From Takakia lepidozioides (lineage: Eukaryota > Plantae > Bryophyta): a DNA stretch of 64,000 nt. The notes under the pieces are model-generated. The model saw only the letters and a program-made list of their open reading frames with translations, made no database searches and had not been told where the DNA came from. Both the position numbers and the translations under genes were made by a program. Positions 21,918-64,000 of this stretch are shown in pieces; the first letter of the stretch is position 1; the number at the start of each line of letters is the position of its first letter. The stretch covers positions 17,050,001-17,114,000 of the forward strand of contig CM060731.1 of the NCBI GenBank assembly GCA_030704615.1, in the 5' to 3' direction.

Positions 21918-24900
21918 TCAGTCATCACTATCATGCCTGCATAAGCAGGTGTTGAAATGTGTGAGCTTAGGTTCTGAACAAGAGAACGATGTGAGTTTCT
22001 CCTTGAATTGCAGCGAAGGACATGCTAACAACCTTCTCATCTATCTCATAAAACGCCTTCTGCATCATTCCAGCTACAATTCTCATCATTTTGTGCATCT
22101 GCAACTTAGCACTCTACCAGATTAAACACCTAGACTAACATCCTCTTGAGCTGCACTAGGGTATGTATGACACCATGTCTGGGTAAAAACAATGTTATGG
22201 ATAATATTTTACAATAGAGAAAACTAGTCTCATACACTGAGAGCGAATAGAAAACACAAGCCCATACCTAAGTTGCTGACAGAAGCGAGCCAAAGAATCA
22301 GATCCAGTCCTGAGAGCAACATCTTCAACGGCTACTGCGCTTGCAAACGTAACAGAGTCGGCCAACTTCAGCTCACAGAGCTCTTTGAGTGAGCATGCCT
22401 GAGTAAGCACCGCTGAATGACCCCCACCAGCTGCGAGTTGCCTGACTTCTCCTACACACCTATTCCACCATCCCACAAGAATTTGATATTACGCAGACAG
22501 TGTGTCCCTTCCCGACTGAATTGCGGAATAGGATCTGATGCTTGTGGGTTAGGATGCAATTCAATGGTACCATAGCCAAGCATCCCCTGTTCTTGATTGC
22601 AGCAGAGAAAGTTGCTTACCAGTCAATGGGAGAGGGATTCCACATGTACACAGTGCTGCCAGTAGCAGCCTGACCACAGCTGTTGTAACCCCACCCGAGC
22701 AAGCGGCCATCACGCATGGCTGCCAGCACGTGTGCCTGCCCACATGTCACCCGTGCCACGCCTTTCGGCATGAGCATCACTGGAACGCGTTGCATGGGGA
22801 AATCAAGGGCTGAAGCACCTCCCACTGAAAACTTCTTGTTAGGGCCCAACCCCAACTGCCCATCCCGACCTGCGCCCCACAAGAAGAGTGCTCCAGAGCA
22901 TGACACTGCGCATGTGTGGGCACCACCACACGAAATCTGGCAAATAGGAACCCCCTCCAAGGATACCACCCTCCTAGGCAGCACTTCTTTGTGTGGTGAC
23001 TGCAGACTGCGATGGCCCAGTTGGCCCATGGACCCCAAACCCCATGTATATCTGGCATGTGGCAAGCCACATTTGCATGAGAGGATAATAAGCATGAGTT
23101 TGAGTAACGAAGATAGAACACCAGAGACCTTAATCCTCAACTCTAGAACATTGCAGTATCTCCATCAGTGCACAAGTACCACAATGAATGATAACAGTCT
23201 GGTCAATCAAGAATTATGGCATGCGAGGACAAGGTAATGGATTTGGAGTGACACCTACACGTCACCCTTTTCAGCAATGGCTGCTGTGTGCTGTTCGCCA
23301 CAGGCAACCTGGGTGATTTTCACGAGTTCTGAATCTTCATCAAGAAATCTTACAAATGCAGTCACATTCCGTGCCTCCTGCCGCCCTTCACAACTGAAAC
23401 CCCTGCCCAATTGTCCATATTCATTGTATCCTGCGAGCATCGTCATTGCCCATCATCAGCAACAGCCCACTGCGTTCCATAGTTGAACCATTTTACAAAG
23501 TTCGGAATCTCCTTAGTTCCTCCAAGTACACTGTATTTGCAGTGTTTGACCACAACCAAATCAACGGCGTGGAATCAACATATGTCCCACAATACATAGT
23601 GTTGACCCTGCGGCCCTGACAACAGAAAAGGGTTGTTTCCTATAACCTCCATACACAAAGTCAAGCATGAGAAATGCAAGAGCCTAGAAAACTTGAACTC
23701 ACGCGAGGTGACCAAAATGAAATGAGATAGCCACATCCAAGGTAACGAAGAGCTCCCAAGAAAAACAAAGGATCAAGTAAACATCAAGGAAGTCACACAA
23801 GAAAAGAAACAATAAAAAGGATAAAGCATGCTGTCTCATCAGCTAGAGAGTCAATCTAAGAGTATGAGAACACTTGACAGTATCCTGTACAACAGTGACC
23901 AAGGGTTGTAATCTGGATAGCCAGTGAAGCCACACCACCTGAAGATTGTGATTAGATTAGTACTACCTGTTTAAACTATGGATGCTTGCGAAGACTCAGC
24001 CAAGATATAGTATGAGCATTGGAATCATAGAAAAACTAGACTTCAACAGAAAATGTACTCATGCCTTCCCTGCAAACCTTGGCTTGCCATAGCCTTACAG
24101 CTATTGACTCCACACGAAACTAACCCTCCCGGAGCCTTTTGTGGGTTCGAACCCCCCAGGGTTTTAGACTTCAATACAGAATATAATCATAAGACGTTGT
24201 TTGCCGTAGCCTTGTGGCCATTTGACCCCGCGCCCAGTTTGAGCGGAACACAAAGGGACAGAACCTACCTTTGTCAGGGCTTGATGTCGGTAGTAAGACT
24301 TACCTTGGAATAAAAAATTGATCCAGGTTCTCTAGAAATCCCTTCACAGAAGCATCAATCTGCTGTGTGTGGTTTGTAACTAGGCTCTAAAAGGGCCTGG
24401 GCTTTTGGCTCAGCCTCGAGACTTTCAAAGTTGGTAACCAGAGGTACAGGCACAATTCCCTTGATAGATTTGAGGAGAGCGTCTCTCTGGTGAGAGAACC
24501 CCAGACAGTATCAGAAAATGAATATTGTCTTCAGGTTGCCCACACAACGGGCAATTGCACTCTCCCTTTCCTCTCTGCTTCTGTTTGCTGTTCAAAGGTA
24601 GGCTTCCCGCCCTGAGTTTATATTTCAGTCTAGTGCCGAGAGTGGGACCCTTGAGGTCATCCATGATGTCCTCCCCCATGTCACAGACTGGAAACAAGTT
24701 CAGTGAAGTTTTCTGCCTAACTTCATTTTCATCAGACAATTTCCAGGCAACAGACATGGCTTTGGACACTACAGCCTCTAAGACAGATGTATCCAGCAGG
24801 GTCAAATTCTTGCGGATTCAGATTCAGATCCTTGGGAATCTCTTCTACTCTCTTCTTCCAGGACTTAGCCTGTTTGACAAGCCTGTTTGACAGGGCGATC

Positions 24901-26841
24901 CTGTTTCCAAGATATAGAGTCGATTAACTTAGGATATCTGATGTTGGACATATGGTGCAGCTGACCCCCATCTGACCTTGAATTTATCTCGTTGGGAGCT
25001 TAAGGAAGGGATGCCAAACTCACCCCGAACAGCCACATTGGCTGTTTTGGAGCATGCTGACATGCACTCCTTAAGCACCCCCACTGCAGGCGCTAGGATG
25101 AAAATAGATGGAAGAACCTTACCCCACATCTGCAAAAGCCCATCTGCTGAAAGGGCTGCCACATGCGCAGACCCACAAGCAACTTGCATTATTACCTGAA
25201 CCCCAAAACCAGAAAATCCGTTTCATGTGAGAACAGCTTAAATGACATGCCCTCTCCACTACAGTGAAATAGACATCCAACCATTTCATACCACTGTTAG
25301 TACATTAGTTATCTGCCAAGGCATCTAAACCAAAAGGCCTGTACAGCATTGGAATGAAATTGATTCAGAGTGACAATATAGGGCATTCAACAGCATACTG
25401 TGTTTGGAAGAAATGCGCCTCGGAATAGACGTGGATAATTTGAACCCTGTAGCAGGAGAAAATTTATCAGTAAGTCCTGACATTTAGAGTCTTCAATGAC
25501 CACCATTGCTCCCTTAAATGAAGTTCTTAGAAAAAAATAACCACAACATAGATGCCCTCTCTATAGAGGAGAATGAAAACCTGGTTTTGCCCCCAAACCA
25601 AAAGTTGACTGACACCAGAAGAGTTGCCATCCACGCCCAAAGAGCGTGGATGGGAGAGGGCAGCAGTGCAGTGAGCCCCACATGCCACTGCAGTTACAAA
25701 CTCATCCTGCAACGCCTCCACTCTTTGTGGTTCTTCGCGGTCTTCCTCTCCCCCATCTCCGAGCTGACCAAACTCATTAGAACCTGCACCAGTGTGTTGG
25801 GTACCGAGACGGTTAAGAACACTCAAAAGTCCAGATCTAAAAAGCCCTTTGAAATAATCTTGTGTCATATCACAATGGCCTTGGAGGGTTCTCTCCTTTG
25901 AATTCGACCAACTCGGACACAACTCATGCATATAAATCCTTTCCCAAGGACAAGCAAAGGGATCCTCTTCCCAGGGACTGCAAGGACGAAACATTCATGT
26001 CTTTATTTCATGTATGACCACTAAATGACAACCACGAGAAACTGGGGTCAGGTCACAGTCAGATGGAAAACTCCACCTGCCCTGGCTTGAAAAATGAAGG
26101 ACATTTTCTTGTGCTTCAACATAATCTTCATATATGTAAGTACAGAGTAACAACTCCAGACAGACACTAAAGGTAACCAATACAGTTGTTGCCAGTCCAA
26201 GCTAAAACCTAAACCGTCAAGAGTGAAGTCTTGACAGTGTGTTCAATCACCAAAACATAGAATTCATCATCATGTGTGGTAGTGACAAGCTGCCACCACT
26301 CCCCACAGCTCCCAGCAGTGGGTGTAGAGCAGAAATTATCATATTGTCCAAAAACTTGCAGACACGCATGTAACAAAGCGGAAAACACACAATGCTCGGG
26401 ACCGACCAGACCCACAGGTGCAGAAGCCTCATAAATACTCGATAATCTGACGTTAGCTTGTATATAAAATTGAAGTCGATGTACAGCAGGCACGATTCAA
26501 GTTAAAACCCTTTCAATTACTAAAATGGGGAACCCTACCACAGAAACATTGCGAATTGTGAGGTAACTTCCAAACCAACCGTCCGGCCTTCATCATCATT
26601 CAATTAAAGTAGATTCTCAAGACATACCCCAGGTGAATAATGTTCCATCCGATGCAACAGCGGCAGTATGTTGAAGGCCGCAGGCAATGTCCGACAAACG
26701 CAGAGAGATATCTCCTGTTGTCGCCTTGAAATGGTGCGGCGGCACGCGCTCAGGCTCTCTGCGAATTCTTCCCCCGGCATGGTAACCCCATACGTAGAGC
26801 GCACTTCCGCGGTGAGCTTCCCTGCCTGCCGTGCCCTCCAT
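21918..26841 (-). CDS. RCC1-repeat (RCC1/UVR8 superfamily) beta-propeller protein
   Basis: Approximate exons: 26841-26628, 25783-25581, 25446-25399, 25195-25122, 23429-23260, 23051-22620, ~22460-22270, and a tentative last exon 21936-21918. Repeats include ACGLQHT, WGSNEFGQLG, ACGAHCT, ACGSAHV, GYNEYGQLG, SCGGAHT, WGAGRDGQLG. No UVR8 GWRHT motifs, so it is not UVR8 itself. Confidence 0.9.
24185..25087 (-). mobile_element. 5'-truncated RTE/RTEX-like LINE fragment in an RCC1 intron
   Basis: Reverse-strand match to 58716-59600 (GVLKECMSACSKTANVAVRGEFG; CPLCGQPEDNIHFL; 3' end GGGTCAAATGGCCACAAGGCTACGGCAAACAACGTCTTATGA). No TSD found. Confidence 0.9.
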
Positions 26842-47909: not shown

Positions 47910-50900
47910 ATGTCGACTCCCATGGCAGCCCTGGGGAACAGAACTCCAGAGCAGTTGAAGGTGGCTGAACTGAGGGAGGAGCTGAAGAAACGGGGTGTTC
48001 AAATTAAGGGTTTGAAAAAAGACCTAGTGGATCGGCTGGAAGAAGTACTTCGCCAAGAAGAAGAAGAACAAATTGCTTTGGAGGCTGCCACATCTGAGGG
48101 TGCTCCTGCATCATCTGAACTTGGGGAGCCCGAGCTCAAATCTCTGGTGCCAGAAAATAAGCTTGAGGAGCCAGAGACAGTATCCAACTCCACGGTACTT
48201 CCTGAGAGCCTACATGATGATAGCATTGTCAGGACGCTTTTTATGTCGGAGGGCAATGGAGAATCTGAGGCTGATCTCAAGCTGGCCAATCCTGCTCTCA
48301 AACACAGGATGGAGGCAGATCCAGAGACTGATGATCAGTCGAACAATGGGAATGGCTTGTCTGAGTTCCATGATAAACCTGGGGTTCAGGACATCCCCAA
48401 ACAGGAACTGGAGCCTGGGGTGGTTCCAGGTCTGGATTCTGGGGAGGTCAAGTCTGTTGAACCTGCACAGGAACCAATCTCCCAGTTTGAGTCATTGTCT
48501 GAACCTGTTTCCTCGCCTGCTATCACTTCAGAAATCAAAGTTACCCCTGTCGAGCTGCCAGAACTTGAGGTAATTCCAGCATCAGTTAATTTAGGTCTTG
48601 AGGAGAGGATAGATGAAGACGGGGATCTACCCCTTAAAGTCGAAGAAAGTCCCTCTGCTGTAGTGGAAACTGGAACTGGACAAGATGAGGTTATGGAATG
48701 TTTGAAGCGAGATGTGAGCAAAGTTCACGAGGAGGAAGGGTTAATAAACGAGATTGAATGTGAAGAGGAAAAGGTGCTAATCGAAATTGAACCTATGGTG
48801 GAAGAAACGGCCAAGTTAGATGCCCCTAGAGAGGGGCCTGTCAAAAGCAAGCCTATGGTGGAAGATAGGGTCAAGGAAGAAGTTCCAACGGAAGGACCGG
48901 GGGAAAGTGAACCTGTGGTGGAAGAGAGTGTCGTGGAAGACATCCCAATAGAGGGGCCAACGGAAATCAAACCTGCCAAGGCAGATACCCCAATGGAGGG
49001 GGAGAGAAGGGAAGAAGTAATGGACGTTGTGATGGATCCTCTGGATGTTGAGGAGTGGAAGGTCAAAGCCATACAGCCCATGGAGCTCGATGCCGACCTA
49101 TTGGCTGGGTCAAAAAGGAAAGATGCAGGTGCATTGTCTCAAACTTTTCTCTCCAGATCTGTGTGGTTGTTTTTGCTTAGGCTGTTAGTTTTTCAACCAT
49201 GGAAAATATAGCAGATGCCCAAGAAGATATCAGTGACGTAAAATGCTTACAAGATATTAAGGATGTGTAAGAAAATTAAGTGTTACTAGATGTTGGTGCT
49301 ACAAGGATAGTTGAAGAGTGTGGGGATTTGTGAACAAGGTCCAGATATAACTCCTTTGGTAACGTTTCACCTCACCGACTTAGAGTTGTGCTTTTTGACA
49401 AAACATTTTGATAAGAAATGTTGAATTTTCTGTGAGATGCTGATGTGTATGTAGTTATCATCAGAGAGAGATGTACTCATAAGACTTTGTTTGCCGTAGC
49501 CTTGTGGCCATAGACCCCACACTGAGTTTGGGTGAAACAAAAGGGACCAGAAACTACCTTTGTGAGAAGCTCACTCCGGTAGTATGAGTTACCTTGATAC
49601 AAAAAATTAGTTTGGGCTTTCCAAATTACTCTAGGAAGCCCTTCCCACAAGCATCAATCTGCTGTGTGTGAGCAGCTCAAAATTTAGACCCCCCAACAGG
49701 GCGGTAAGGGCTTTAGGCTCAGCCTCAAGATTTGAAAGTTGGTGAACAGAGGAGCCGAGACAATGTTCTTGATTGTTCTGAAGAGGGTCACTCTCTGGTG
49801 AGAATATCCCGGACAATGTATCAGACAATGGATATTGTCTTCAGGTTGCCTGCACATCGGACAATTACAATCTCCTCTTCCTCTCTGCGTCTGTTTATGG
49901 TTCAAAGGTACCCGCCCTGAGTTTAAATTTCAGTCTAGTGCCAAGGGTAGGTAGGCCCTTGAGATCATCCTTAAGGACCTTGCCCATGTCACAGATTGGA
50001 AACGAGTTCAGGGAAGTTTTATGCCTAACTTAATTGTCATTGGACAGTCTTTGTGCATGAGACATGGCTTTGGACACAACCCCCTCCAGATCAGCTTCAT
50101 CCAGTAGGGTCAATTCATCAGGACTGATATTCAGATATTTAAGATCTGGCTTGTTTAACAGGACAGTCTTGCTTCCAAGAAATAGATTCGATTATCTTAG
50201 GGTATCTGGTATTAGGCATGCGATTCAACTGACCCCACCATCTGACCTTGAATTCATAACGTCGAGAGCTTAAGGGAGGTATGCCAAACTCACCCCGAAC
50301 AGCCATATCAGCGTTCTAGAACAAGCCGACAAGCTTTTTTTGAGCACTGTGGCCTGAATGGATTCTACGACTTTCGCATGGATGGAGTTGTTGACCCACA
50401 CAACAGATGTGTACTCAAATGCCAGCTGTGTAACATTACAAAGCTTGGTCCTTTTAACTACAGTGTTGAGTCCTCTGCAGTGGAAAAATTTAGTGAGACC
50501 CAAAGCTTCGCGTTTAGCTGATCAAATCACTCTTTGTATATGCGCATCCCAGTTACAGTTGGAGGAAAACTCAACACCAAGATAAAGTGTAGGAAGGGAG
50601 TACTGGAATCTCTTCGTCACCCCATTTGCATTTGAGATCCCCTCCTCCCTCCCCACAGTCGTTGAATGCCACCACTGCACATTTACTAACATTAGCTTGT
50701 AGCCTCCACAGGTCAAAGAACCTCTTCGCAGAATCAATCAGCTCCTGGAGATTGGATGGGGTATGTGAAGTCATTTGCTAACACAAGAGCTGGTATGGTG
50801 GCATCACCCACCTTTAGCCCAAACCCCTCACTTTCCACGTCTTCAAGAAGCTGATCAATGAAAACATTGAAGAGCAGCGGGGAAAGGGTACAACCTTGTG

Positions 50901-53900
50901 CTACACCTTGGTCAATATCAAAGAAGTTAGACTTCTGTCCATTGACCATAACACAACTTTTGGTAAGGTTGTGGACCATCCTCCACGTCTTTCCCCTGAT
51001 CCAAGAAGACCAATGCCGGAGGCATTGCCCGTCATGCCATGCTGTATCATAAGCCTTGTTGACATCCAGGAAGAAGACAAAATTGGGCTTTCAGAGGCTG
51101 AAGCCAGCTCAAATGGAGTTATCATCATAATCGTATTTTTCTCTAGTGATACTGGATTAAATGTTTGAAGATCTCAAAAGGCACAAACACACTACATGGG
51201 TGGAATCACATCTAGGGTGAAAATGGAGTATGCACAGTTACAGAAGGCAACAATATATAGTCTGTTCATCCACTGTCAGACCTGATTTTTCACGTACATG
51301 CTTATCATATTGCAGCCCTAGTGACTACAAGTCTTCATGAAAGCCGTTGTAAGTATTTATCAATTTAGCATGCGTCAGGACATCGATCCTGAATTTTTCT
51401 TTGTCTTCAGCTTGCAATTGCGACTAGAAATACAGTGCATACATAATGGTGAAGATCATGATATTCATCTTAGCCTTTTACTGTTTGTTTGATGCTTATT
51501 TTCCTTGAAGGTACCCAAGGATACTGGATGGATCCATTTGTTCATGCAGTTAAAGCTTATTCGACCATTTACTCTTCTGCTTGGGTTTTTATATCAGATG
51601 CAGAGTCAAGGTCGCAGGAGCTCACCAAGAGACAACGCCGATGGAATACTGGGAAGAGTCTGGGAAGCGAGAATGATGCGAGACCCCTGCCCAAAATAGT
51701 GACCACAGATTGTCCAAAAGAGACCGTTGCTCAGGAACCAAAAGAGATGGCCCCATCACCAATTGCTCCCTCTGCATCTGCAGCAGCTTCACCAAGGAGT
51801 GGGCATGCAGGTGGGGTAGAGAGGGTGACCATTTCCAGGCCTTCATTGTCAAGGACAGACACAGCAGTCAATGGGGAAACTGACAAGGCGCTTTTTGGTG
51901 AGTTTTCTGCGAGATATTAAAATTTGGTCTGATGTTCTGAAGTTTCTGGGTTGTGTGATGTAAAGGACGCTGAGTTTGGACGATAATTTGGGCCCTTAAC
52001 CTTCCAGATGTAGAACAAAAGTCCAAAGTTTCACAAAACAGGTTGCTGTATAAAGTCAGACATGAGTTTGCTCTGGCAGGGTTAGACAGAAGTAGTTTTA
52101 ATCTATGTATCTTGATGTATCACAGCTCGTCTTCCTAACAAACGTTGCAGATTTCTGCTTAGGTTGGGGTTCCCATCTGTTCATTATTGAATTCGGTCAG
52201 ACCTAGTGTCGGGTTTTTTGGTTCGATCAATGTTCCGAGCAGTATTCCAGCACCAGAAACTGAAGGGTTGGCCAAACCAGGTAGATGAAACCCAGTCACG
52301 TAAGAAAAGGTTGACATCACAAGTTCTTGGCATATCTGTCTGCTAACAAAATCCTTAAAGATTGATGGTCTTGGCATATTTGTCTGTGCAGTTCCCCCGT
52401 CTCTCAAGGTACCAACAACATCCCTAAAGATTGATAGATTTCTACGTCCTTTTACATTCAAGGCAGTGAAGGAGCTGCTGGCACAGACTGGCTCAGTCCA
52501 ACACATGTGGATGGACCAGATTAAAACTCACTGCTATGTTACGGTGCGCTTTCTGTGCTGGATATGTTTACTTGTTGGGGTTTTGTGTTGTCACTTGTGG
52601 ATTGATGTTGACTTAATAGATAGAGAGGGAAATGCTGGTGTCAAAGCCACAGCTTGCAGGATGTCGTGATCTTTATGTGGGTCCACTAGATTGACTTCTT
52701 TTTTTTTGTCTTGTTTCCACATTGTCATATGCACATTTCCCAGGTGGCTTTATCTTTATTACTTGTTTCCAGTCTGTGACATGGGGGAGGACATCTTGGA
52801 TGACCTCAAGGGTCTACCCACTCTCGGCACTAGACTGAAATTTAAACTCAGGGCAGGAAGCCTACCTTTGAACAGCAAACAGAAGCAGAGAGGAAAGGGA
52901 GAGTGCAATTGCCTGTTGTGTGGGCAATCTGAAGACAGTATTCATTTTCTGATACACTGTCCGGGGTTCTCTCACCAAAGAGACGCTCTCTTCAAATCTA
53001 TTAAGGGAATTGTGCCTGTACCCCTGTTTACCAACTTTGAAAGTCTCGAGGCTGAGCCAAAAGCCCAGGCCCTCCTGAGGCCTAGTTTTTGGGCAAATCA
53101 CACACAGCAGATTGATGCTTGTGTGAAGGGATTTCTAGAGGATATCTGGAAAACCCGGATTAATTCTTTATATGGAGGTAAGTCTTACTACCAACGTCAG
53201 CCCCTGACAGAGGTAGGTTCTGTCCCTTTTGTTCCCGCTCAAACTGGGCGCGGGGTCAATGGCCACAAGGCTTCGGCAAACAACGTCTTATGAGTACAAT
53301 CTTTATTACTCGTAATCATTTTATTTTCTTAAAAATTAATTTTTTGCTGCATTACTTTGTTCGATGAACTAACCACCATGTGGCACATTCCTTGTCTCCA
53401 TGATGTTCTCAGTATGCAACAGTCGATGAGGCAGTGGCTACACGCAATGCACTCTACAATTTGCAGTGGCCACCCCAGGGTGGACGCTTATTAACAGCGG
53501 AGTTTGTGGAACTGGAAGAGGTGAAGTCACGCTGTGAAGGTGAGAAAACTGTGGTCGCACCAGTCACTACCCATCATGGACTACCAGAGACAATCAGGGC
53601 CACCTCTGAAAGTGGCGGCCCAGTTCCTCAACCTGGCCATCCCCCTCCCTTGGCTCCAATACCAGTTTCGGCACTTCCTCCACCCCCTCCTCTGCCACCC
53701 CCACCAAGGGACAGGCCTCCTGTGCCAATCAAGCAAGGTAAGTAACTGTATTCTCTGATGTTTTCAGATAGGGTTTTTAGGTACCCTCAACTCACCTGAA
53801 GCTTGGAGTCCAAGTCCTTGTGAAAAGAAGGTTGTCCATGTATTGTTGGCATCAGACCCAGACTTCAAGGTGAATTGTTTTGGTTACTGACCTCCACATA

Positions 53901-54479: not shown

Positions 54480-55699
54480 GTAGTGGATGTTTAGTTGGAA
54501 TCTCAGAGAGCATTCCACATCAGCTCAGTAGGATGTTTGCACGTAAGTTGTAGCTTCCTTGCATCAATCTATGTTGTCTTCTGGATTAGAGAAATATCAT
54601 CCTAGGAGAGGTGAATAAGATTGCCTCTTAGTTGGATCGGAAGATAGACATTCGGAAGAGAGTTAGTCTGTTGCTCTTGGCTTTAAGCTCAAGACAATAT
54701 AGCCACAGATGATGTAGGGGGTAAAGACTGGTTCTTCTTTTCACTTTTTTTTAAAGCTTTCCTTATCTTCTCTAAGAGACTGCCGACACTCTTGTTAGCT
54801 GTCGATGTGTTAAGGATACTATCATCAAAACCTTCCCTCACATGTCGACATTTTTTACAGGTGTACTTGGAAGGTGTTCCCCTATTTTTTTAAAAGGTAG
54901 TCAGAGTGTCAGAGTGTAAGAAAGTCTAACCTGATTTGTCTGGCATGTGTGTGTGTGATATTCTAGACAAGGAGTCGCCAATGAACAAACTAGAGGGCAA
55001 AGATCATCTCAGCTGTTAGGTGCTCTTGGCAGCAAGATTGTCATCTGCTTGATTTTATGCCTATTGTGTGCTATGGTGATAGTTTTTCGGAAGGGTCGTA
55101 CATAAATACTTTTCAGCATTGATGAACACGTCGATTTATAACCCTCTCAATGCCCATGAGACTGTTTATGACATCCGAGTCCTCTGGAGGCCAAGTCATA
55201 GAGTTAATATCGGGCTTCCTATCCCATGGGGCGGTGGTCAATCCACTGAATTCTCGCCAAGAGCTCCTGGTGCAGAGGATGCCATGCTTGCCCAAGTGGT
55301 ATCAAAAGCGGTTAGAAGAGCAGCTCCCCTGCGTTCAGAGCATCTTGGAAGAGTTGCGACCAGCACCTCCAGGCCTTCCTTCCCTCCGTCATAAGATTTG
55401 ATAAAACAACATACATGTGAAGACTTTGGTTTGTAGGCTTGGTATGGCACCTGTACATGCGCCGCTGCGAAGTCATCCCTGTCACGGCCACCATCGTGGG
55501 TCCCACCGCTACTTGCCATATACTGCCCAGCAGCCATGCTCGGATCAGTGGAACCCACAAGTAAACTAAAGAGCTTCGCATTCCCTTTTCTTAAGATTCA
55601 AGTGTTCCATTTCTGTCAGTCTTTCTTTTCTGCAGGTAGGTAGGAGGTAGAATTTGGGTGCTCTTGTGCCCGCACTCATAAGCATAGGCATGGTAGCAT

Positions 55700-56226
55700 G
55701 CACCGGTGCTATTCTGAGCGCGCAGGTAGACGCCATACCTAGGGGCCTGTCTTCCCCTTGTTGTGAACGGACAGGAGGCCTCACATCATTGGCCTGGCCT
55801 CTGAGGTGCTCTCGGCGTACAACCGCTTCGCCGCTCAGCTTCAGGGTGTGGGGCTATCGGTTCAACCTCACAAGTGTGGTGCATGGTCTCCAGCCGCCCC
55901 CAAACTTTGTACCTCTCGCACATTTCATCACACTGTCTGACAACATTCGCGTCTTGGGCGTCCCCTTCGGTACCACCTCTTTCACTTCCTCTTTCTTGGA
56001 GAATGGCCTTGATCAAGATGTCATTCATTCCGACCTCCTTCCTCACCTTGGGGACCTACAGGTAGCCTATGGCATCCTAACGAAATGCTTTATCCAGTGG
56101 CCATCCGATCTTCTTAGGACTTCCTCCCTACTATTGAGTTTTTGCGGTTATTGTCAGGGTTTGATGCTACCATCATGAATATCTTTGGTCGTCTTATGAG
56201 ACCGGGGGCTTTGGATGGATCCGAGG
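55700..56226 (+). mobile_element. CRE-like (early-branching non-LTR) retrotransposon RT-thumb fragment
   Basis: IRVLGVPFGTTSFTSSFL..LLPHLGDLQVAYGILTKCFIQWPSDLLRT..FDATI resembles the CRE-clade pattern vLG.P.G...f....L.D.Q.a..ll..C......llR. Frameshifted. Confidence 0.6.
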
Positions 56227-56378
56227 CCCGGGGGGTGCACTCCTCATTAAATGTACCAGCCACGTGCGTGCACAGGAGGGGGTATTTTAAACCCCCCCCA
56301 TGTACAACATTATACATACAGAGGGGGGTTTAAAACACCTTAAATATAATTTTGCAGGAAGGGGTTGTTGAGTTTTTA

Positions 56379-56477
56379 GGGATAGTGTAGTGGTAAGAAT
56401 GGCGATTCCGCCGCGATGCATCCCGGGATCGAATCGTGGAATCGTCGTTTTGTATGTTTGTTTTTTTTTTTTTTTTT
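56379..56477 (+). ncRNA. Degenerate tRNA(Asp/His)-like Pol III unit followed by T17
   Basis: GGGATAGTGTAGTGGTAAGAAT (A box) ... CCCGGGATCGAATC (B-box-like) ... poly-T. The acceptor and anticodon stems do not pair, so it is not a functional tRNA. Confidence 0.5.
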
Positions 56478-56913
56478 CGCTCCACGATCTTTCTCCCCTG
56501 ACCTCCCGCGGCTTTCTCTTTTCTTTCTCCTCCTCTCCCGCGTTCGCCTTCCCTTCCGCGGGCTTTCTCTTTTTCCTCCTCTCCTCTCCCCTCCTCTCCA
56601 CAGGGCATGGTAGGACAATGTGGTGAGGGCACCAGAATGTGGTGAGGGCACTGACTTGGGAGAAGGTTTGAGGTTGTGATGTATGTAGAGGGCAGGAATG
56701 TAAGTGCGCGGGAATGTGGGGCAGGCCTGGGCTGATCGGTGATGATATGCGGGTGTGGTGGCGGATTGTTGTGCAGCAATGACAGGAGGACATGGGCATC
56801 AAGATTCCCAGTCATCAGAGGTAATGAGCACATTAGGCCTATTTTCTTTCCTAATAATGATTGGCGTGACACAATGGTTGTACTCACTGTATCAGGCCTA
56901 TTCTCATCCTTAT

Positions 56914-59601
56914 TGAATCCAAGCAGCCAGAGGGACAAGATGCCCCTAAGTGTACAGAACCTGAACGTCCTGAATCTGAAGGATTTGGTACTCAAGAGTT
57001 TACACAAGACGAGCAAAATCTACACATGGGGTAACTGTCCCCCCTTTGCAGAACGGTTGGGCGTCCAGGAGCAATCCCAAGCTACCTAGACGACAAACAA
57101 TTCACATGCAAAGGGCTGGCTTGCGGCTGGCCACTTTCAACTTCTCAGGGCTTACTAACCAAAGGAAACAACTCGAAGTGGGACAAGTCCTTCGGACTAA
57201 TGATATTCATATCTGTGCTGGGCAAGAAACATGGGAAACTTCGGATAAACTGGTTGGAGATGTCAATGGTTATAAATGGGCAGGTAGGATGTGTACTCTC
57301 AAGGCAGCCTCTGCCAAACGCGGTAAAAAAGGGGTTGGATTCTTTGTCCGTGATTTCTTGTTTGATAATTGTGAAATTATCAACAAGGGTTTGAGGTACG
57401 AACATAGTATCTGGCTAAAACTGAATCTGAAGGGCGGCATGAGTACGAAGGACCTCTTTGTGGGTTGTGTTTACATGCCCACAGAGGGGACCCTTAGTGC
57501 TGACGCAGACAAAGCCTTCGAAGATGTAAAGCTGGACTGTGCTTCGTTCCTTGCCAAAGGTCAGGTAGTGCTATTGGGTGACTTCAATGCCCGGGTGGGC
57601 AAAGGGCTCCATCAGGACGATATCATTGGGCCTTTTGGTGAGGACGAGCCCTCTATAAAGAGTGCTGCAATTTGAAAACCAACAGAGAATTGTGGGCGAG
57701 GTACTATCAGCTCCGGAAAGATATCAATCAGCTTGTTAGGTCTCAGAAGAAATTATACTGGGATAAGTTATACAGTGAAATAAACTCAAACCACCATGGT
57801 GGTAATGACAAGAAATTATGGTTGGCCCTTCAACGTTTGTACAAGCCTAAAAACGGTCAGCAAGTACAAGCGCTGAAGACTACTAAAGGTGCAGTGGTGA
57901 CTTCATCGGTTGACATTGTCAAAACCTTTGAAAATCACTACAGTATCCTTGGCAGAACTTCTAGGTCTAACAGTGAGGGGTCTTCTGCTGAATGGAGGGA
58001 CACAGTTGGAAAAATTGTTCCTATGATTCAAAACAGCCCTGATGAACTGGAGTATATTTCAATGGCTTATAACGCTCCCATTAGTTCTTCTGAGATTGTG
58101 GAAGCAATTGAACATTTAAATGGATATAAAGCTGGTGGACCTGATGGTATTGTCAACGAGCTTATCAAGCACGGTGGCGATCCCATGATAGAGGCCCTAG
58201 TTCTCCTCTTTAACCTTATCTGGAAGACTGAAATGATCCCCTTTCGCTGGCGACAGGGGGTCATTGTCAGTCTATACAAGAAGGGTGACAGAGAAGAACC
58301 GGGGAACTACCGTGGCATCACACTCAGGAGTTGATTAATTGCGCGAAGAGATACTTTGATCTTTGGGGGCTAGAGGCTAATGTCAGCAAATGTGCAGTGG
58401 TAGCATTCAACGACAGAGGAGAGGGAGGAAGTGATCTTAAGTGGCAGTGGGGTAGCCAAGAGATCCCGGTCCTCCCTTCCTACACTTACCTGGGCGTTGA
58501 GTTTTCCTCCAATTGTAATTGGGATGCACATATCCGGAAAGTTGTTCGAACTGGCAAGGGCAAAGCTCTGGGGCTCACTAAATTTTTCCACTGCAGAGGG
58601 GTCATCTCTGAGGTTAAGAAAACCATGCTTTGTCGCGTTATTAGACCTGCCTTGGAGTACGGATCTGCTATATGGGTTGATAACTCCAACCAGGCTAAGT
58701 CTCTAGAATCCATTCAAGTGGGGGTGCTTAAGGAGTGTATGTCAGCATGCTCCAAAACAGCCAATGTGGCTGTTCGGGGTGAGTTTGGCATTCCATCCTT
58801 AAGCTCCCGACGAGATGAATTCAAGGTCAGATGGTGGGGTCAGCTGCAACATATGCCCAACACCAGATATCCTAAGTTGATTGACTCTATATCTTGGAAA
58901 CAGGACCGCCCTGTCAGTCCTGGCAGAAGAGAGTAGAAAAGATTCTCAAGGACCTGGACCTGGATCCGCAAGTCTTGACCCTGCTGGATAAATCTGCCTT
59001 AGAGGCTGTAGTGTCTGAGGCCATGTCTGTTGCCATGAGATTGTCTGATGAAAATGAAGTTAGGCAGAGAACTTCCCTGAACTTGTTTCCAGTCAGTGAC
59101 ATGGGGGTGGACATCTTGGATGACCTCAAGGGTCTACCCACTCTCGGCACTAGACTGAAATTTAAACTCAGGGCAGGAAGCCTACCTTTGAACAGCAAAC
59201 AGAAGCAGAGAGGAAAGGGAGAGTGCAATTGTCCGTTGTGTGGGCAATCTGAAGACAGTATTCATTTTCTGATACGCTGTCCGGGTTCTCTCACCAAAGA
59301 GAGGCTCTCTTCAATTCTATCAAGGGAATTGTGCCTGTACCCCTGTTTACCAACTTTGAAAGTCTCGAGGCTGAGCCAAAAGCCCAGGCCCTCCTGAGGC
59401 CTAGTTTTTGGGCAAATCACACACAGCAGATTGATGCTTGTGTGAAGGGTTTTCTAGAGGATATCTGGAAAACCCGGATTAATTCCTTATACGATGGTAA
59501 GTCTTACTACCAACGTCAGCCCTGTTCCTTTTGTTCCCACTGAAACTGGGCGCGGGGTCAATGGCCACAAGGCTACGGCAAACAACGTCTTATGAGTACA
59601 A
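56914..59601 (+). mobile_element. RTE/RTEX-like LINE (probable ORF1 tail, APE endonuclease, RT, C-terminal zinc finger), internally deleted, with 12-bp TSD
   Basis: APE motifs ATFNFSGL, GQETW, CVYMP, LGDFNAR. RT start KAGGPDGI..LYKKGDREEPGNYRGITL, then YTYLG and CPLC..H...C. TSD TCTCATCCTTAT at 56902-56913 and 59602-59613. Deletions at ~57650 and ~58325. Confidence 0.94.
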
Positions 59602-60115
59602 TCTCATCCTTATCATCCCTCGCCTTTTGGAAAATTCCAGCCATAATTGAAGGGCAATTGGTTGTTGTACTTAACTGCACGAATGTTCCCCTTTCTGTTG
59701 GAATGAGCCGCACGTCCTTTCCATGCTGACATACCCTTTCTTCTTCCTGCAGGATCCTTTGCCCAGCCCTGTTATTTCTATCATTTGTGCCATCCTCTTG
59801 GCGTTTCCACAGCCTCCCCTCATTGCCAGTGAAGTGTTTCTTTCTCTTCCCTTTGTCTTTAAAGACACTCCAACTGTTAGCTGCAGTACCCTTCGCTGAT
59901 TTCTTATTGCCTTTGACCTCATGTATGTTTTCAATCATGTTTGAAGGGTGATCACTTGCTGCCATATGCATGACTGTGTCCTTGACTGCTTCTCTTGTCT
60001 CAGTATGATGTTTAATTGTTGTCATGTCAGGCTGTGCTCAGCTGCACCGTGGTGTCTTCAAATGGATCAATTTTTCAGACACGGTCTTGCCAACTGAATG
60101 ATGCAGGTTCACTTG

Positions 60116-60745
60116 GGAGAGTGCACTCCCCCTTTCCTCTCTGCTTCTGTTTCATGTTCAAAGGTAGGCTTCCTTCCCTGAGTTTAAATTTCAGTCTAGT
60201 GCCGAGAGTGGGTGGACCCTTGAGGTCATCCAAGATGTCCTCCCCCATGTCACTGACTAGAAACAAGTTCAGGGAAGTTTTATGCCTAACTTCATTTTCA
60301 TCAGACAATCTCATGGCAATAGACATGGCTTTGGACACTACAGCCTCTAAGTCTGATTTATCCAGCAGGGTCAAGACTTGCGGATCCAGGTCCAGGTCCT
60401 TGAGAATCTCTTCTACTCTGGCCTTGGGAAAACACCTTTTGATCTCAGTCCAGAAAGTGGTCAGAGGTACCAATATCAGTTCTGTCGATCAACACATTGG
60501 CACACTGGGGGAACAAATTTTTGTCCATTATGATATAGTCCACAATGGAACGTTCCCCAGTTTGGGATTTCTCACGAGTCCACTGCACTTGGTCACCTCT
60601 TGTCTTGTTAATCAAGGTCAAAAGCTGAAGCTCTTCCAGACAGTTAATTAACCGTCTGCCATTAGAATTCAGCTCGTCCTCACCAGAAGACCCAATGATA
60701 TCGTCCTGATGGAGCCCTTTGCCCACTTGGGCATTGAAGTCACCC
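60116..60745 (-). mobile_element. Same LINE family, rearranged fragment (endonuclease C-terminus joined to post-RT region)
   Basis: GDFNAQVGK..NSNGRRL..SIVDYII..TSDH is fused directly to VEEILKDLDLDPQ..KGEC. Confidence 0.9.
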
Positions 60746-60819
60746 TACAATAGCACCACAGAGATGAAGAGAAGCTTTGGAATGAGACACTTTTCTGACC
60801 CCAGTCAATGGTGGGACAA

Positions 60820-61585
60820 TGTGGGTGGATGGTCAACTGGAAACAGCAGCGGCAACAGCGCAATTGATAAAGCAAGGCACTGCTGATGAAAGGTACCTTC
60901 TTCAACGTATTTCAGCCTGAGGGCACCTTCTGGTTTGACCTGTTTCAGCCTGTTTTTCCCTCTCATCAGACTCAGCCCTGAAGCATATGTATTGAATTCT
61001 GTAAGTTAGCTCGTTGGGTGGATCTGCGGTGCTCTGGAGTGACTTTGCAAGTTGCTGCCGAGGTGGTAGCATGACAGTACCTAAAAAAAGATAATAGATA
61101 GAACAAGGGACTGCTAATGAAGGTACCTTCTTCAACACATTTCAGCCTGTTTTTCCCTATTATCAGAGTCGTCCCTAGATTTCCAGATGGCGGATTCCAA
61201 GCTCCAGATTACCTATGATTCCATGTGGAATGATAGCTACAAGAAACCTGGATGGGTAGATGGTCAACTGGAAGCCACAGTAGTAGCTGCAGAGGCATGA
61301 TGTACGCATTGTTAGTGTGGAGGGAGGGGTAGCTGTTGATGCAGGGAGAGGATCGTGGGTGCAAAATCATCCAAGAGGGCCAGATTTGGAGCAAGGAACA
61401 GCGCTGGCAGGAGTTCTATAAATTTGATCCACAGCGGTGGGACAATATTGTCAACAAGGTGAGCTTTCTTCATGCAACATCGTAGGGAGTTTGACAGAAC
61501 TTTGTATTTAAATATGTTAGTGTGGAGGGAGGGCTAGCCGCTGATGCAAGGATGGACTGTGGGTTCAGGATCACCCAAGAGGGCT
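60820..61585. repeat. Short dispersed direct repeats upstream of the transposase frame
   Basis: ACTGCT(G/A)ATGAA(A)GGTACCTTCTTCAAC at ~60879 and ~61110. TGTTAGTGTGGAGGGAGGG..CCAAGAGGGC at ~61310 and ~61515. GATGGTCAACTGGAA occurs twice. Confidence 0.75.
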
Positions 61586-61827
61586 ACCAGCAGTGGAAGT
61601 AGCAGCATTTGGTCAATAGCAGCAGCAAAAATTAACAACATCAAACTCATCAATCAGGTACTTGCTTCTGTATACATTTCATCCTCTTATGAACGTAGTT
61701 CCTACTTGGACAGCCTATAGGGTTGTATAAAACAGGACTTTGGAACCTTCCAACCCGGGTGCTTTGTTATTGGTCTATCAAGGTCTGATTTGAAATGTTT
61801 TCATTGCATTTTGCAGGTGAACTCATC

Positions 61828-64000
61828 ATGGAAGAAGAGTTGGAAGTAAAAGTCCTGCTTGTTGGAGGAGATGCATCACCAAACAGGCTTGGTTCTGTGT
61901 TCACTATGCAAGGTGTCACATACAAATGCATCCGAGCAGAAATTATAGGTGATGAGCTTGTCTCAGCAAAATTTCATTTCCTTTCCATGGGGGGTAGTGT
62001 CCTTTCAGCCAAGCAAGAAGAGAGGATGGTTCTGAAAGGGGATACTGTACACATTAAGATTTCAGACCAAAATGATGGGGACCAAGGATTGAAAAGACCT
62101 CTATCTTCCAGTGGTTCTACGATCTTGCATGAGGACAGACCAGGCGAGGACCCGGCACCAGTGTCTACCAAGATGAGGATGGACCCTGATACACCCTTTG
62201 CTGGCGATGGTGGAAATGAAGACCATGCACATGAGCATGCACTTCAGCAGAGATCTGGTAGATTGTGCAGCACGTTGGCTACATCCAACGATATTCAAAA
62301 ATGGCAGAAAGAGATTAGAGCCGTTGAAAGGAAAATCTCTGCAGAAGGACGATGTGACAAGTTTGAGCTGATGACAAAGGATCAACAAGGACAAGCAATG
62401 TTCCACATATGGTGTGTTGAGTGTGAGGATGTTTATGCACGGTCTGGGAAAAACAAACCATATGATGCATGTGCAAACTTTATGAGATCTCATTTGAGGA
62501 GTGAGGGGCATCGCATAGCCTATGAGAGGCGTCATGGGAAGGGTTCATCACAATGTGTCATCAGCCCTGTAAATGCAGATGAAGCATTAGACGCAAAGAA
62601 GAACAGGGTGAAGGAGGCATTAGAGGAAGTCGCTCGGTTTTGTGAGGACAATCCTGGAAACAGATTTGAGATTGTGGAAGCCACAATTGGAGACTATTCG
62701 CAGTTGGGTTCCATAAGGATTAGGTGCCCACTGGATTCGAAGTGGCTACTCTTGTTTCCAAGGACAGGTTCTTTGCAATCTTCTTTGACAGAGCATGTGA
62801 AAGGAAAAACTCATGTCGATGCAGAGATTTGCCAGAAGGTTGGAAGTAGTGAAGGACCTTGCAAAAAGAGAGGAAGGCCTCCAAAGCCTATGATTGCCAA
62901 AGATGTAAAGCAACGGGATCTAAGCTCTTTCTTGGTCAGTCAACCTGTGTTGCCGTCCCCACCACTTGACAATCCAATTGTGGCATCAACAATGGGAGCA
63001 TCCTCGTCACAAACTCCATACGCTTGTGTTGACGCTGCCCAACGGGGAGATCTGATCGAGGATTGACAATTACAGCAAAGGTCCCAATGCAACAAAGGAA
63101 GAGACAGTTTGTGTTGGGGCCTATGGGATGAATGGTGGGAGTACAACCAGCAGAGAATAAGTCTGAAACCATTCCTTCAAGATAGCAAGGGAGGAAAGAA
63201 GTGGTATGTCGAGCCGTTGACAAATGCAACCATCACTCTAAACAATCAAGAGCATAAGGTTGTTGGTACGTTTCGGCACGCGGATTGTTTTAGAGTGTCA
63301 TTGGATGGGGAGCCATTTCCAAACTTGAGATGTTCAGCATGTTCTTCCATTCCCTTGGAAAATGACTTCAGAATGAGGGTATATAGAGAAAGAGGTGCCA
63401 TGGAATGTAGAGGGGAGAGAGATACTGGCAAGGGAAGAAGGTTGTCATATCTTGGAAATGCGGAGATTGTCAAACAAGTTTACAAAAACAGACAGGAGTT
63501 GAGGCAGTTGAGGTTCAAATTGTGGGAGGCCAGGACCAAAGTGGCATCATTGTCTGTGCGATGTAGGAGTTTGAAGGAGTCTGGGATTGAGGCAATTGAA
63601 AGAGGAGATGTTCTCAAATTTTGTCGTGATATTGTTGATGCACATAGGAGGGGGGATTTTGAAGGAAAAGAAAGTTTGTGGGATTTTCTTGTTGATATGG
63701 GCAAGAATATTGACAGGTCTCCACAAGGGAAGAGGTATGGTACTAGCACAAAAACAATGTTTGAGACTGTGCAGCTTTGGGGGGGTCCGAGATTGCATCA
63801 TTTTTTGGCTTCAAATGTGGGGGGTCCTTCTATTGATACTACAAGACGGTCTTTGAGGAAAGGTTTGAAGTATAGAGCGGGAGAAACGGATGATATATTT
63901 CAGCATGTGGCTGGAATTTACAGAGATGTGATGGAAGATGCAAATATTCCATTGGGAAGCATCCCAGTGATGGTGGCCGAAGATGAAACTGTTGTGAAGC
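61828..64000 (+). mobile_element. Zinc-finger/AT-hook DDE-type transposase-like gene, P-element/THAP9-like, incomplete at window edge
   Basis: One frame is open from 61795 to 64000 except for a single TGA at 63064-63066. It contains WCVEC..HLRSEGH, RCPLD..HVKGKTH, KKRGRPPK, CWG, RCSAC, then RYGTSTKTMFETVQLWGGPRLHHFLASNVGGPSIDTTRR..G..VMVAEDETVVK. That last stretch resembles the helix-turn-helix-to-first-catalytic-Asp layout of P-type transposases. Confidence 0.6.

Follow-up and report, generated by a model that had tools for sequence, protein, structure and literature searches.

The window analysed here is a 64,000-nucleotide stretch of the genome of the moss Takakia lepidozioides (GCA_030704615.1, CM060731.1, positions 17,050,001-17,114,000 of the forward strand; positions below are counted from its first base), and our analysis concerns the part from 56227 to 64000. 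This part ends inside a gene for a transposase-like protein. Leading up to the gene are a candidate element terminus, a hairpin, a transfer RNA (tRNA)-like unit, a CT-rich tract, a long antisense frame and two pieces of long interspersed nuclear elements (LINEs; Table 1). An earlier note, made from the sequence of this DNA, had read these as the left part of one large DNA transposon, inserted into a CRE copy and later hit by the two LINEs. The evidence set out below indicates that 61789-63999 very probably codes for the first ~740 residues of a P-like transposase, which has the P-type layout, comes from a large nameless family and is present here as an inactive copy.

The frame of more than 700 codons that had been described as transposase-like is present as 425 codons, one in-frame TGA and a further 311 codons that run to the window end. 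The extra N-terminus contains two related zinc-finger-like modules of the form CxxC...H...H (62400-62520 and 62700-62830) and an AT-hook-like GRPPKP at ~62870. Two relatives, P0038 and P0046, begin with a finger similar to these modules, and residues ~170-384 of the N-terminal part have homologues at the N-termini of other members of the family (P0012, E 3e-17; P0005). The second part of the protein has a beta-rich domain in which three Cys are conserved, a long helix of coiled-coil type, a helix-turn-helix (HTH) of the P type and the first catalytic strand, AEDET, whose Asp is residue 306 of this piece and the sole catalytic residue inside the window. P0005 aligns with the window at 34% over 90 residues before the TGA and at 46% identity over 301 residues after it. 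Because P0005 covers both pieces, and because the upstream zinc-finger region is common to several family members, the frame is one gene. The TGA lies in a variable linker and may be a nonsense mutation, or may fall inside a small unrecognised intron. With a TGA in frame and LINE debris upstream, the copy is inactive.

Table 1 Features of the analysed part of the window, in order of position.
Feature	Position	Strand	Remarks
Left flank	55651..56229	+	Broken frames; by eye they resemble the region after a non-long terminal repeat (non-LTR) reverse transcriptase
Candidate left terminus GGGGGGTGCACTCCTC	56230..56245	+	Near-palindrome centred on GTGCAC
Hairpin	56281..56339		Arms 56281-56297 and 56323-56339, 17 nt, 94% complementary; 25-nt loop
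Antisense frame, distal half	56333..56913	-	Stop-free; crosses the CT-rich tract, T17 and the tRNA-like unit
tRNA-derived-looking unit	56383..56477	+	A-box-like TAGTGTAGTGG 56383-56393; B-box-like GGATCGAATC 56426-56435; T17 56461-56477
CT-rich tract	~56478-56603	+	Ends in AG
Motif GGTAGGACAATGTGG	56609..56623	+	Repeated at 60810-60824 and, with 2 mismatches, at 61436-61450
Nested LINE	56914..59601	+	APE-type endonuclease; internal deletion
Antisense frame, proximal half	59614..60037	-	First ATG near 60025
Unique sequence	59614-60121		508 bp
Palindromic junction GGGAGAG-TGCA-CTCCCCC	60115..60131		Compared with three other LINE copies
LINE fragment	60122..60759	-	5'-truncated, internally deleted; ~375 bp of the 3' end missing; reverse transcriptase region lost
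Gene-upstream region	60760..61788	+	Pairwise direct repeats; several exon-like pieces ending AG|GT, on an apparent splice reading
Transposase N-terminal part	61789..63063	+	425 codons; first in-frame ATG 61795, next 61828
In-frame TGA	63064..63066	+	Poorly conserved linker; P0005 spans both pieces with a shorter linker
Transposase second part	63067..63999	+	311 codons, open at the window end

The protein has many relatives in sequence databases. A word search recovered two ENA proteins at 52-55% identity to the window piece, and the closest relatives (P0001, P0002 and P0153) lie on ENA contigs of up to 390 kb; P0002 continues beyond the point at which the window ends, and the motifs there read like a DDE core. 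A profile built from the window piece and P0002 and searched against 1.84 billion representatives returned 1395 proteins at E<=1e-3, 171 of them at E<=1e-30, and many are 800-1200 residues long. In a cluster look-up of the relatives, no member carries a name. The family alignment shows nearly invariant D, D, DxxH and E columns: numbered as in P0004, whose identity with the window piece is 32% across 287 residues (E 9e-38), D289 is found in 68/69 sequences, D409 in 63/65, D411 in 62/65 and E650 in 41/45, and D460-x-x-H463 is conserved as well. Around 21 metagenome relatives we found neither flanking inverted repeats nor a tRNA, and copy-to-copy alignments ran to the contig ends. At one metagenome locus (L009:2550-2669), a hairpin whose 55-nt arms are 85% complementary lies ~1.1 kb upstream of the transposase frame. 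The 1123-residue relative P0028 carries a PTM/DIR17-like Tudor domain at residues 1066-1119 (Pfam E 9.7e-10), and other long members have a conserved C-terminal block past the catalytic core; such a tail may be chromatin-reading.

Assignment of the enzyme to a superfamily comes from its predicted fold and from language-model features. The AlphaFold2 model of P0004 (predicted local distance difference test score, pLDDT, 88.4) was searched with Foldseek, which placed the Drosophila P element transposase (6pe2/6p5a) at the top with E 2.4e-10, followed by RAG1 at 1e-3. Superposition of the same model on 6p5a with VIA-align gave Z 24.7 and a root-mean-square deviation of 5.3 for 412 aligned residues, pairing model residues 185-687 with chain residues 134-566, and the match spans the HTH, the RNase H fold and the insertion domain. 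The runner-up folds in VIA-align were Transib (Z 12.0), RAG1 (~10) and Hermes (~8). The 311-residue piece of the window, modelled alone (pLDDT 90), displays the beta-rich domain in which three Cys are conserved, along with a long helix, a domain of helices and the first catalytic strand. Its sole match at Z of at least 5 in a set of 48,161 chains is again 6p5a, with Z 6.2 over 63 residues of the HTH; residues 20-110 of the model, where the three conserved Cys are located, had no fold match in a region that was barely sampled. A feature search of the ESM Atlas had clusters with PF21787, PF21788 and PF21789 as its top named neighbours, at scores of 0.96-0.92. These models and features, obtained on the family, bear out the P-like call of the earlier note, and the enzyme in all likelihood belongs to the P superfamily. 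The note had not recognised the architecture from standard plant superfamilies (hAT, CACTA, Mutator, PIF, Tc1, Helitron); with the enzyme so placed, it does not fall outside the known superfamilies.

P elements use GTP as a cofactor, make long staggered cuts, and carry terminal inverted repeats (TIRs) of 31 bp along with 8-bp target duplications. The family of the moss protein resembles the P element transposase and THAP9 in the order of its parts, with an N-terminal zinc DNA-binding module followed by a coiled coil, an HTH and an RNase H domain that is split and contains a helical insertion domain, and it has the D, D, DxxH and E positions in common with them. It differs in the spacing between the first and second Asp, which is ~120 residues in the family and 73 in the fly enzyme, and in the long extra N-terminus of the moss protein, which bears C2H2-like fingers and in which THAP was not found. 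The moss gene also differs in having introns, provided that the apparent splice signals are read correctly. The domain order of the fly transposase and its catalytic residues, D230 and D303 among them, have been described, and the THAP domain is confined to animals (PMC7776569). By homology, the moss enzyme is predicted to work by cut-and-paste: its zinc modules and HTH would bind the element ends, the coiled coil would pair subunits, and the DDE site would cleave and join DNA. In the layout of the family, the N-terminal zinc module occupies the place of the fly THAP, and is followed by the coiled coil, the HTH and the split RNase H with its all-helical insertion domain.

The nearest language-model neighbours of the family are Atlas clusters from fungi, diatoms and parabasalids, some of whose members have TNP-like (P/THAP9) Pfam domains. 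A Basidiomycota cluster scores 0.96, with 225/256 shared features. The proteins of these clusters are of similar length, the Pfam P models are passed by just a part of them, and the likeness is one of features, without alignment. We found no description of P-type transposons in bryophytes in the literature searched.

Upstream of the gene, the internal direct repeats reported earlier are present at 60822-61585. They are pairwise and partial, and a tandem array, considered as an alternative description, was rejected after Tandem Repeats Finder found none. A tblastn search with all family proteins against 56000-61900 gave no match that would mark upstream exons. The gene-upstream region is linked to the left arm by one motif: 56607-56623 and 60808-60824 agree at 16/17 positions in the same orientation, with a score of 29 against a shuffle mean of 21.2 (standard deviation 2.3, maximum 33). 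By shuffling, the chance of such a 16/17 match is ~1-2 in 100, and it is the sole internal link between the left arm and the gene region.

Much of the intervening sequence derives from a single APE-type LINE family, which has four copies in the window (24178-25085, 49468-50747, 52761-53302 and 56914-59601) that are 75-94% alike and have a common 3' end (GTCTTATGAGTACA...) without a poly(A) tail. The plus-strand copy at 56914-59601 is bracketed by a perfect 12-bp target duplication, TCTCATCCTTAT, at 56902-56913 and 59602-59613. This duplication, together with a 3' end that coincides with those of the three other copies, means that the LINE inserted later into the sequence now split at 56913|59614. 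The minus-strand fragment at 60122-60759 is not a simple insertion, because it lacks the ~375 bp of the 3' end, where reverse transcription starts. Of the two later LINE insertions that had been proposed, the first thus stands, and the second does not stand as a clean event. At the junction that precedes this fragment, seven bases ahead of the LINE part repeat, in reverse complement, the LINE bases that come next, a pattern resembling the footprints of hairpin-opening (P-nucleotide) repair.

Removal of the plus-strand LINE restores a continuous minus-strand frame of 335 codons, in agreement with the description of an antisense open reading frame split by a LINE; 2000 Markov shuffles gave a mean of 99 codons and a maximum of 242. 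The frame has no Pfam match, and its halves, searched separately, returned no relatives. It may represent a second gene, either young or decayed, and part of its length may be owed to the T-poor minus strand (19%). No other recognisable gene or repeat was found to fill 56230-56913 and 59614-60121.

The tRNA-like unit that had been proposed within the distal half of this frame is partly substantiated. Its A- and B-box-like sequences stand at tRNA spacing (1 match in the window against 0.01 expected, for a pattern composed post hoc from the site itself), and T17 begins 25 nt past the B box. The cloverleaf was not found: ARAGORN makes no call at the unit even at 80% thresholds, at which 38 chance calls arise elsewhere in the window, and Rfam gives no tRNA match there even at E 10. 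The RNA of 56396-56451 folds instead as a 16-bp stem with several G-U pairs and the B-box-like bases near its apex (-27.5 kcal/mol, z -2.2). The unit is best called tRNA-derived. Cassandra-type terminal-repeat retrotransposons in miniature (TRIMs) and the tRNA-derived heads of short interspersed nuclear elements (SINEs) likewise have A and B boxes inside them, with a T run after the boxes. The unit differs from these in that neither a second LTR nor a target duplication nor a cloverleaf was found here.

A superfamily with a tie to RNA polymerase III (Pol III) genes is Dada, whose elements are large and intron-bearing, lack clear TIRs and target tRNA or small nuclear RNA genes (PMC3706591). We rejected it on anatomy: Dada sits within a small-RNA gene and has halves of the gene on both sides, whereas here the boxes lie together ~150 bp inside the proposed end. 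It was also rejected on motifs, since in a rough string test the signature strings of the moss protein's family (EDET, SDGD, DRQN, GGPR, RRRK and DQD) occur in no conserved Dada block of Dataset S1, the strings being absent or confined to unaligned low-complexity parts.

The CT-rich tract noted earlier is present directly after T17, and appears to be a pyrimidine-rich promoter or 5' untranslated region (5'UTR)-type sequence on the plus strand. The tract, its AG, a ~216-bp non-coding piece and a GT would then make up the promoter and first exon on the strand of the gene.

At the far left, the hairpin with 17-bp arms is as the earlier note had it, and its DNA fold is unusually stable for its composition (z -3.9, with 0/200 shuffles folding equally well). 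The flank beyond it had been called CRE-like, which we could not confirm: its frames have no Pfam or PDB sequence match, and their likeness to a reverse transcriptase is one seen by eye. The hexamer GTGCAC occurs at 21 sites in the 64 kb, and one of them, at 56235, lies 8 nt from the boundary that the earlier note had placed at a break in that frame. Such proximity to a boundary chosen on other grounds would arise by chance in <1 in 100 cases.

Taken together, we tentatively read the stretch as the left part of an autonomous DNA transposon that has introns, belongs to the P superfamily and is now dead, an interpretation to which we give a little less than an even chance. About the same holds for its critical component, namely that the left arm reaches to the GTGCAC motif at 56230 and is of the same element as the transposase gene. 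From left to right, such an element would consist of the terminus, the hairpin, the tRNA-derived box unit with T17, the CT-rich promoter- or 5'UTR-like tract, a piece resembling a first exon but non-coding, and a long first intron. This intron would have received one LINE, with its 12-bp duplication, and also a second LINE, which later lost its 3' end by deletion; as cargo, the element would carry the antisense frame and the Pol III-like unit. The position of GTGCAC near an independently chosen boundary and the motif common to the left arm and the gene-upstream region both support a single element, as do the target duplication of the plus-strand LINE, the promoter-like reading of the CT-rich tract and the lack of another recognisable gene or repeat in the left arm. 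The most specific form of the proposal is an unlikely one: a land-plant P-superfamily transposon of more than 8 kb, in which a GTGCAC terminus is followed by a hairpin, a tRNA-derived Pol III-type cassette with terminator and an antisense second gene.

Several observations weigh against the reading as the left part of a P-superfamily transposon. For the enzyme, sequence-level searches of Pfam, NCBIfam and the PDB returned no match to the window pieces or to full-length relatives. The curated P models PF12017 and PF21787-PF21789 are unmatched by the window pieces and eight full-length relatives, merely 1/48 members touches PF21787 (E 0.017), and Pfam detected no THAP domain in the window pieces or the full-length relatives. 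The fold of the catalytic core is that of the 32%-identical P0004, because the window stops at the first catalytic strand. For the element, the right end would lie beyond 64000, so the window displays neither a TIR pair nor the target duplication of the element. The motif link is weak, with shuffles reaching 33 against the observed 29. The 3'-truncated LINE at 60122 shows that the join to the upstream region of the gene has been remade by deletion or rearrangement. Finally, a GTGCAC-bearing look-alike of the left terminus at 60116-60131 could be the end of another element, and with ends placed around 56230-60131, a block of 1.2 kb, no 8-bp duplication (at least 6/8) is found together with a TIR (at least 9/14).

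These points lend themselves to two other accounts of the left arm. A less probable one, although one with a real share of our belief, is a mosaic, in which the left end of the P-like element lies within 60760-61789 and 56230-60121 is unrelated debris, made up of the decayed remains of a Pol III unit of tRNA origin (either a SINE head or a solo TRIM LTR), a low-complexity frame favoured by chance, and a LINE. The truncated LINE at 60122 would then be the breakpoint between the two parts. The antisense frame, which has neither relatives nor a domain and lies on a strand whose shortage of T favours open frames, would need no function, and the unit would lack a cloverleaf as a decayed repeat does. 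This account has to contend with a 335-codon frame that is longer than those of all 2000 composition-matched shuffles, with the GTGCAC at the independently chosen boundary, with the motif common to the left arm and the gene-upstream region, and with the unit itself, around which no LTR pair or target duplication was seen by eye. We consider it improbable that two P-like elements lie side by side, with 56230-60131 as a non-autonomous derivative (~1.2 kb once the LINE is subtracted) that has GTGCAC ends and adjoins an autonomous copy. It would explain why 56230-56245 and 60116-60131 match at 13/16 bases on either strand, the sole such pair in the window, and why the two GTGCAC motifs align in inverted orientation at ~14/17 bases with one gap. 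However, in its outer half the right-hand motif consists of LINE bases that every other LINE copy also has, and no combination of ends gives both the 8-bp duplication and the TIR.

A separate question is whether the enzyme of the proposed transposon is a P-type enzyme at all. Kolobok elements have TTAA target duplications and RR...YY termini. The moss enzyme could be a Kolobok transposase, or represent an undescribed sister superfamily, that matches the P element merely since the PDB has no Kolobok structure; this we regard as quite improbable. Kolobok transposases have a DxxH signature, as does the family of the moss enzyme, and some Kolobok families encode two proteins (PMC9587614). The misses of the Pfam P models and of the THAP domain would also be as expected. 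In all Kolobok lineages but one, however, a zinc finger lies between DxxH and the catalytic E (PMC9587614), and a four-ligand finger was not found there in the family alignment, where H503, C532 and C620/H621 are conserved in scattered positions. Furthermore, all of the top named language-model neighbours are clusters with P/THAP9 Pfam domains, and the P match at Z 24.7 extends across the HTH, the RNase H fold and the insertion domain.

Pfam and NCBIfam do not see the family, which was recognised solely through its fold and language-model features, so standard annotation would probably leave it unnamed. The copy in the window is dead and incomplete, and its value is that of a pointer: with its several kilobases of upstream region, it is a concrete locus at which to ask what replaces the animal THAP domain, and whether the family has P chemistry, including GTP dependence and long staggered cuts.

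To the left of the analysed part, 53404-53742 (plus strand) is an open frame with the look of an RRM-type exon and, after it, a tail rich in proline, and it may be part of a host gene beside the repeats.

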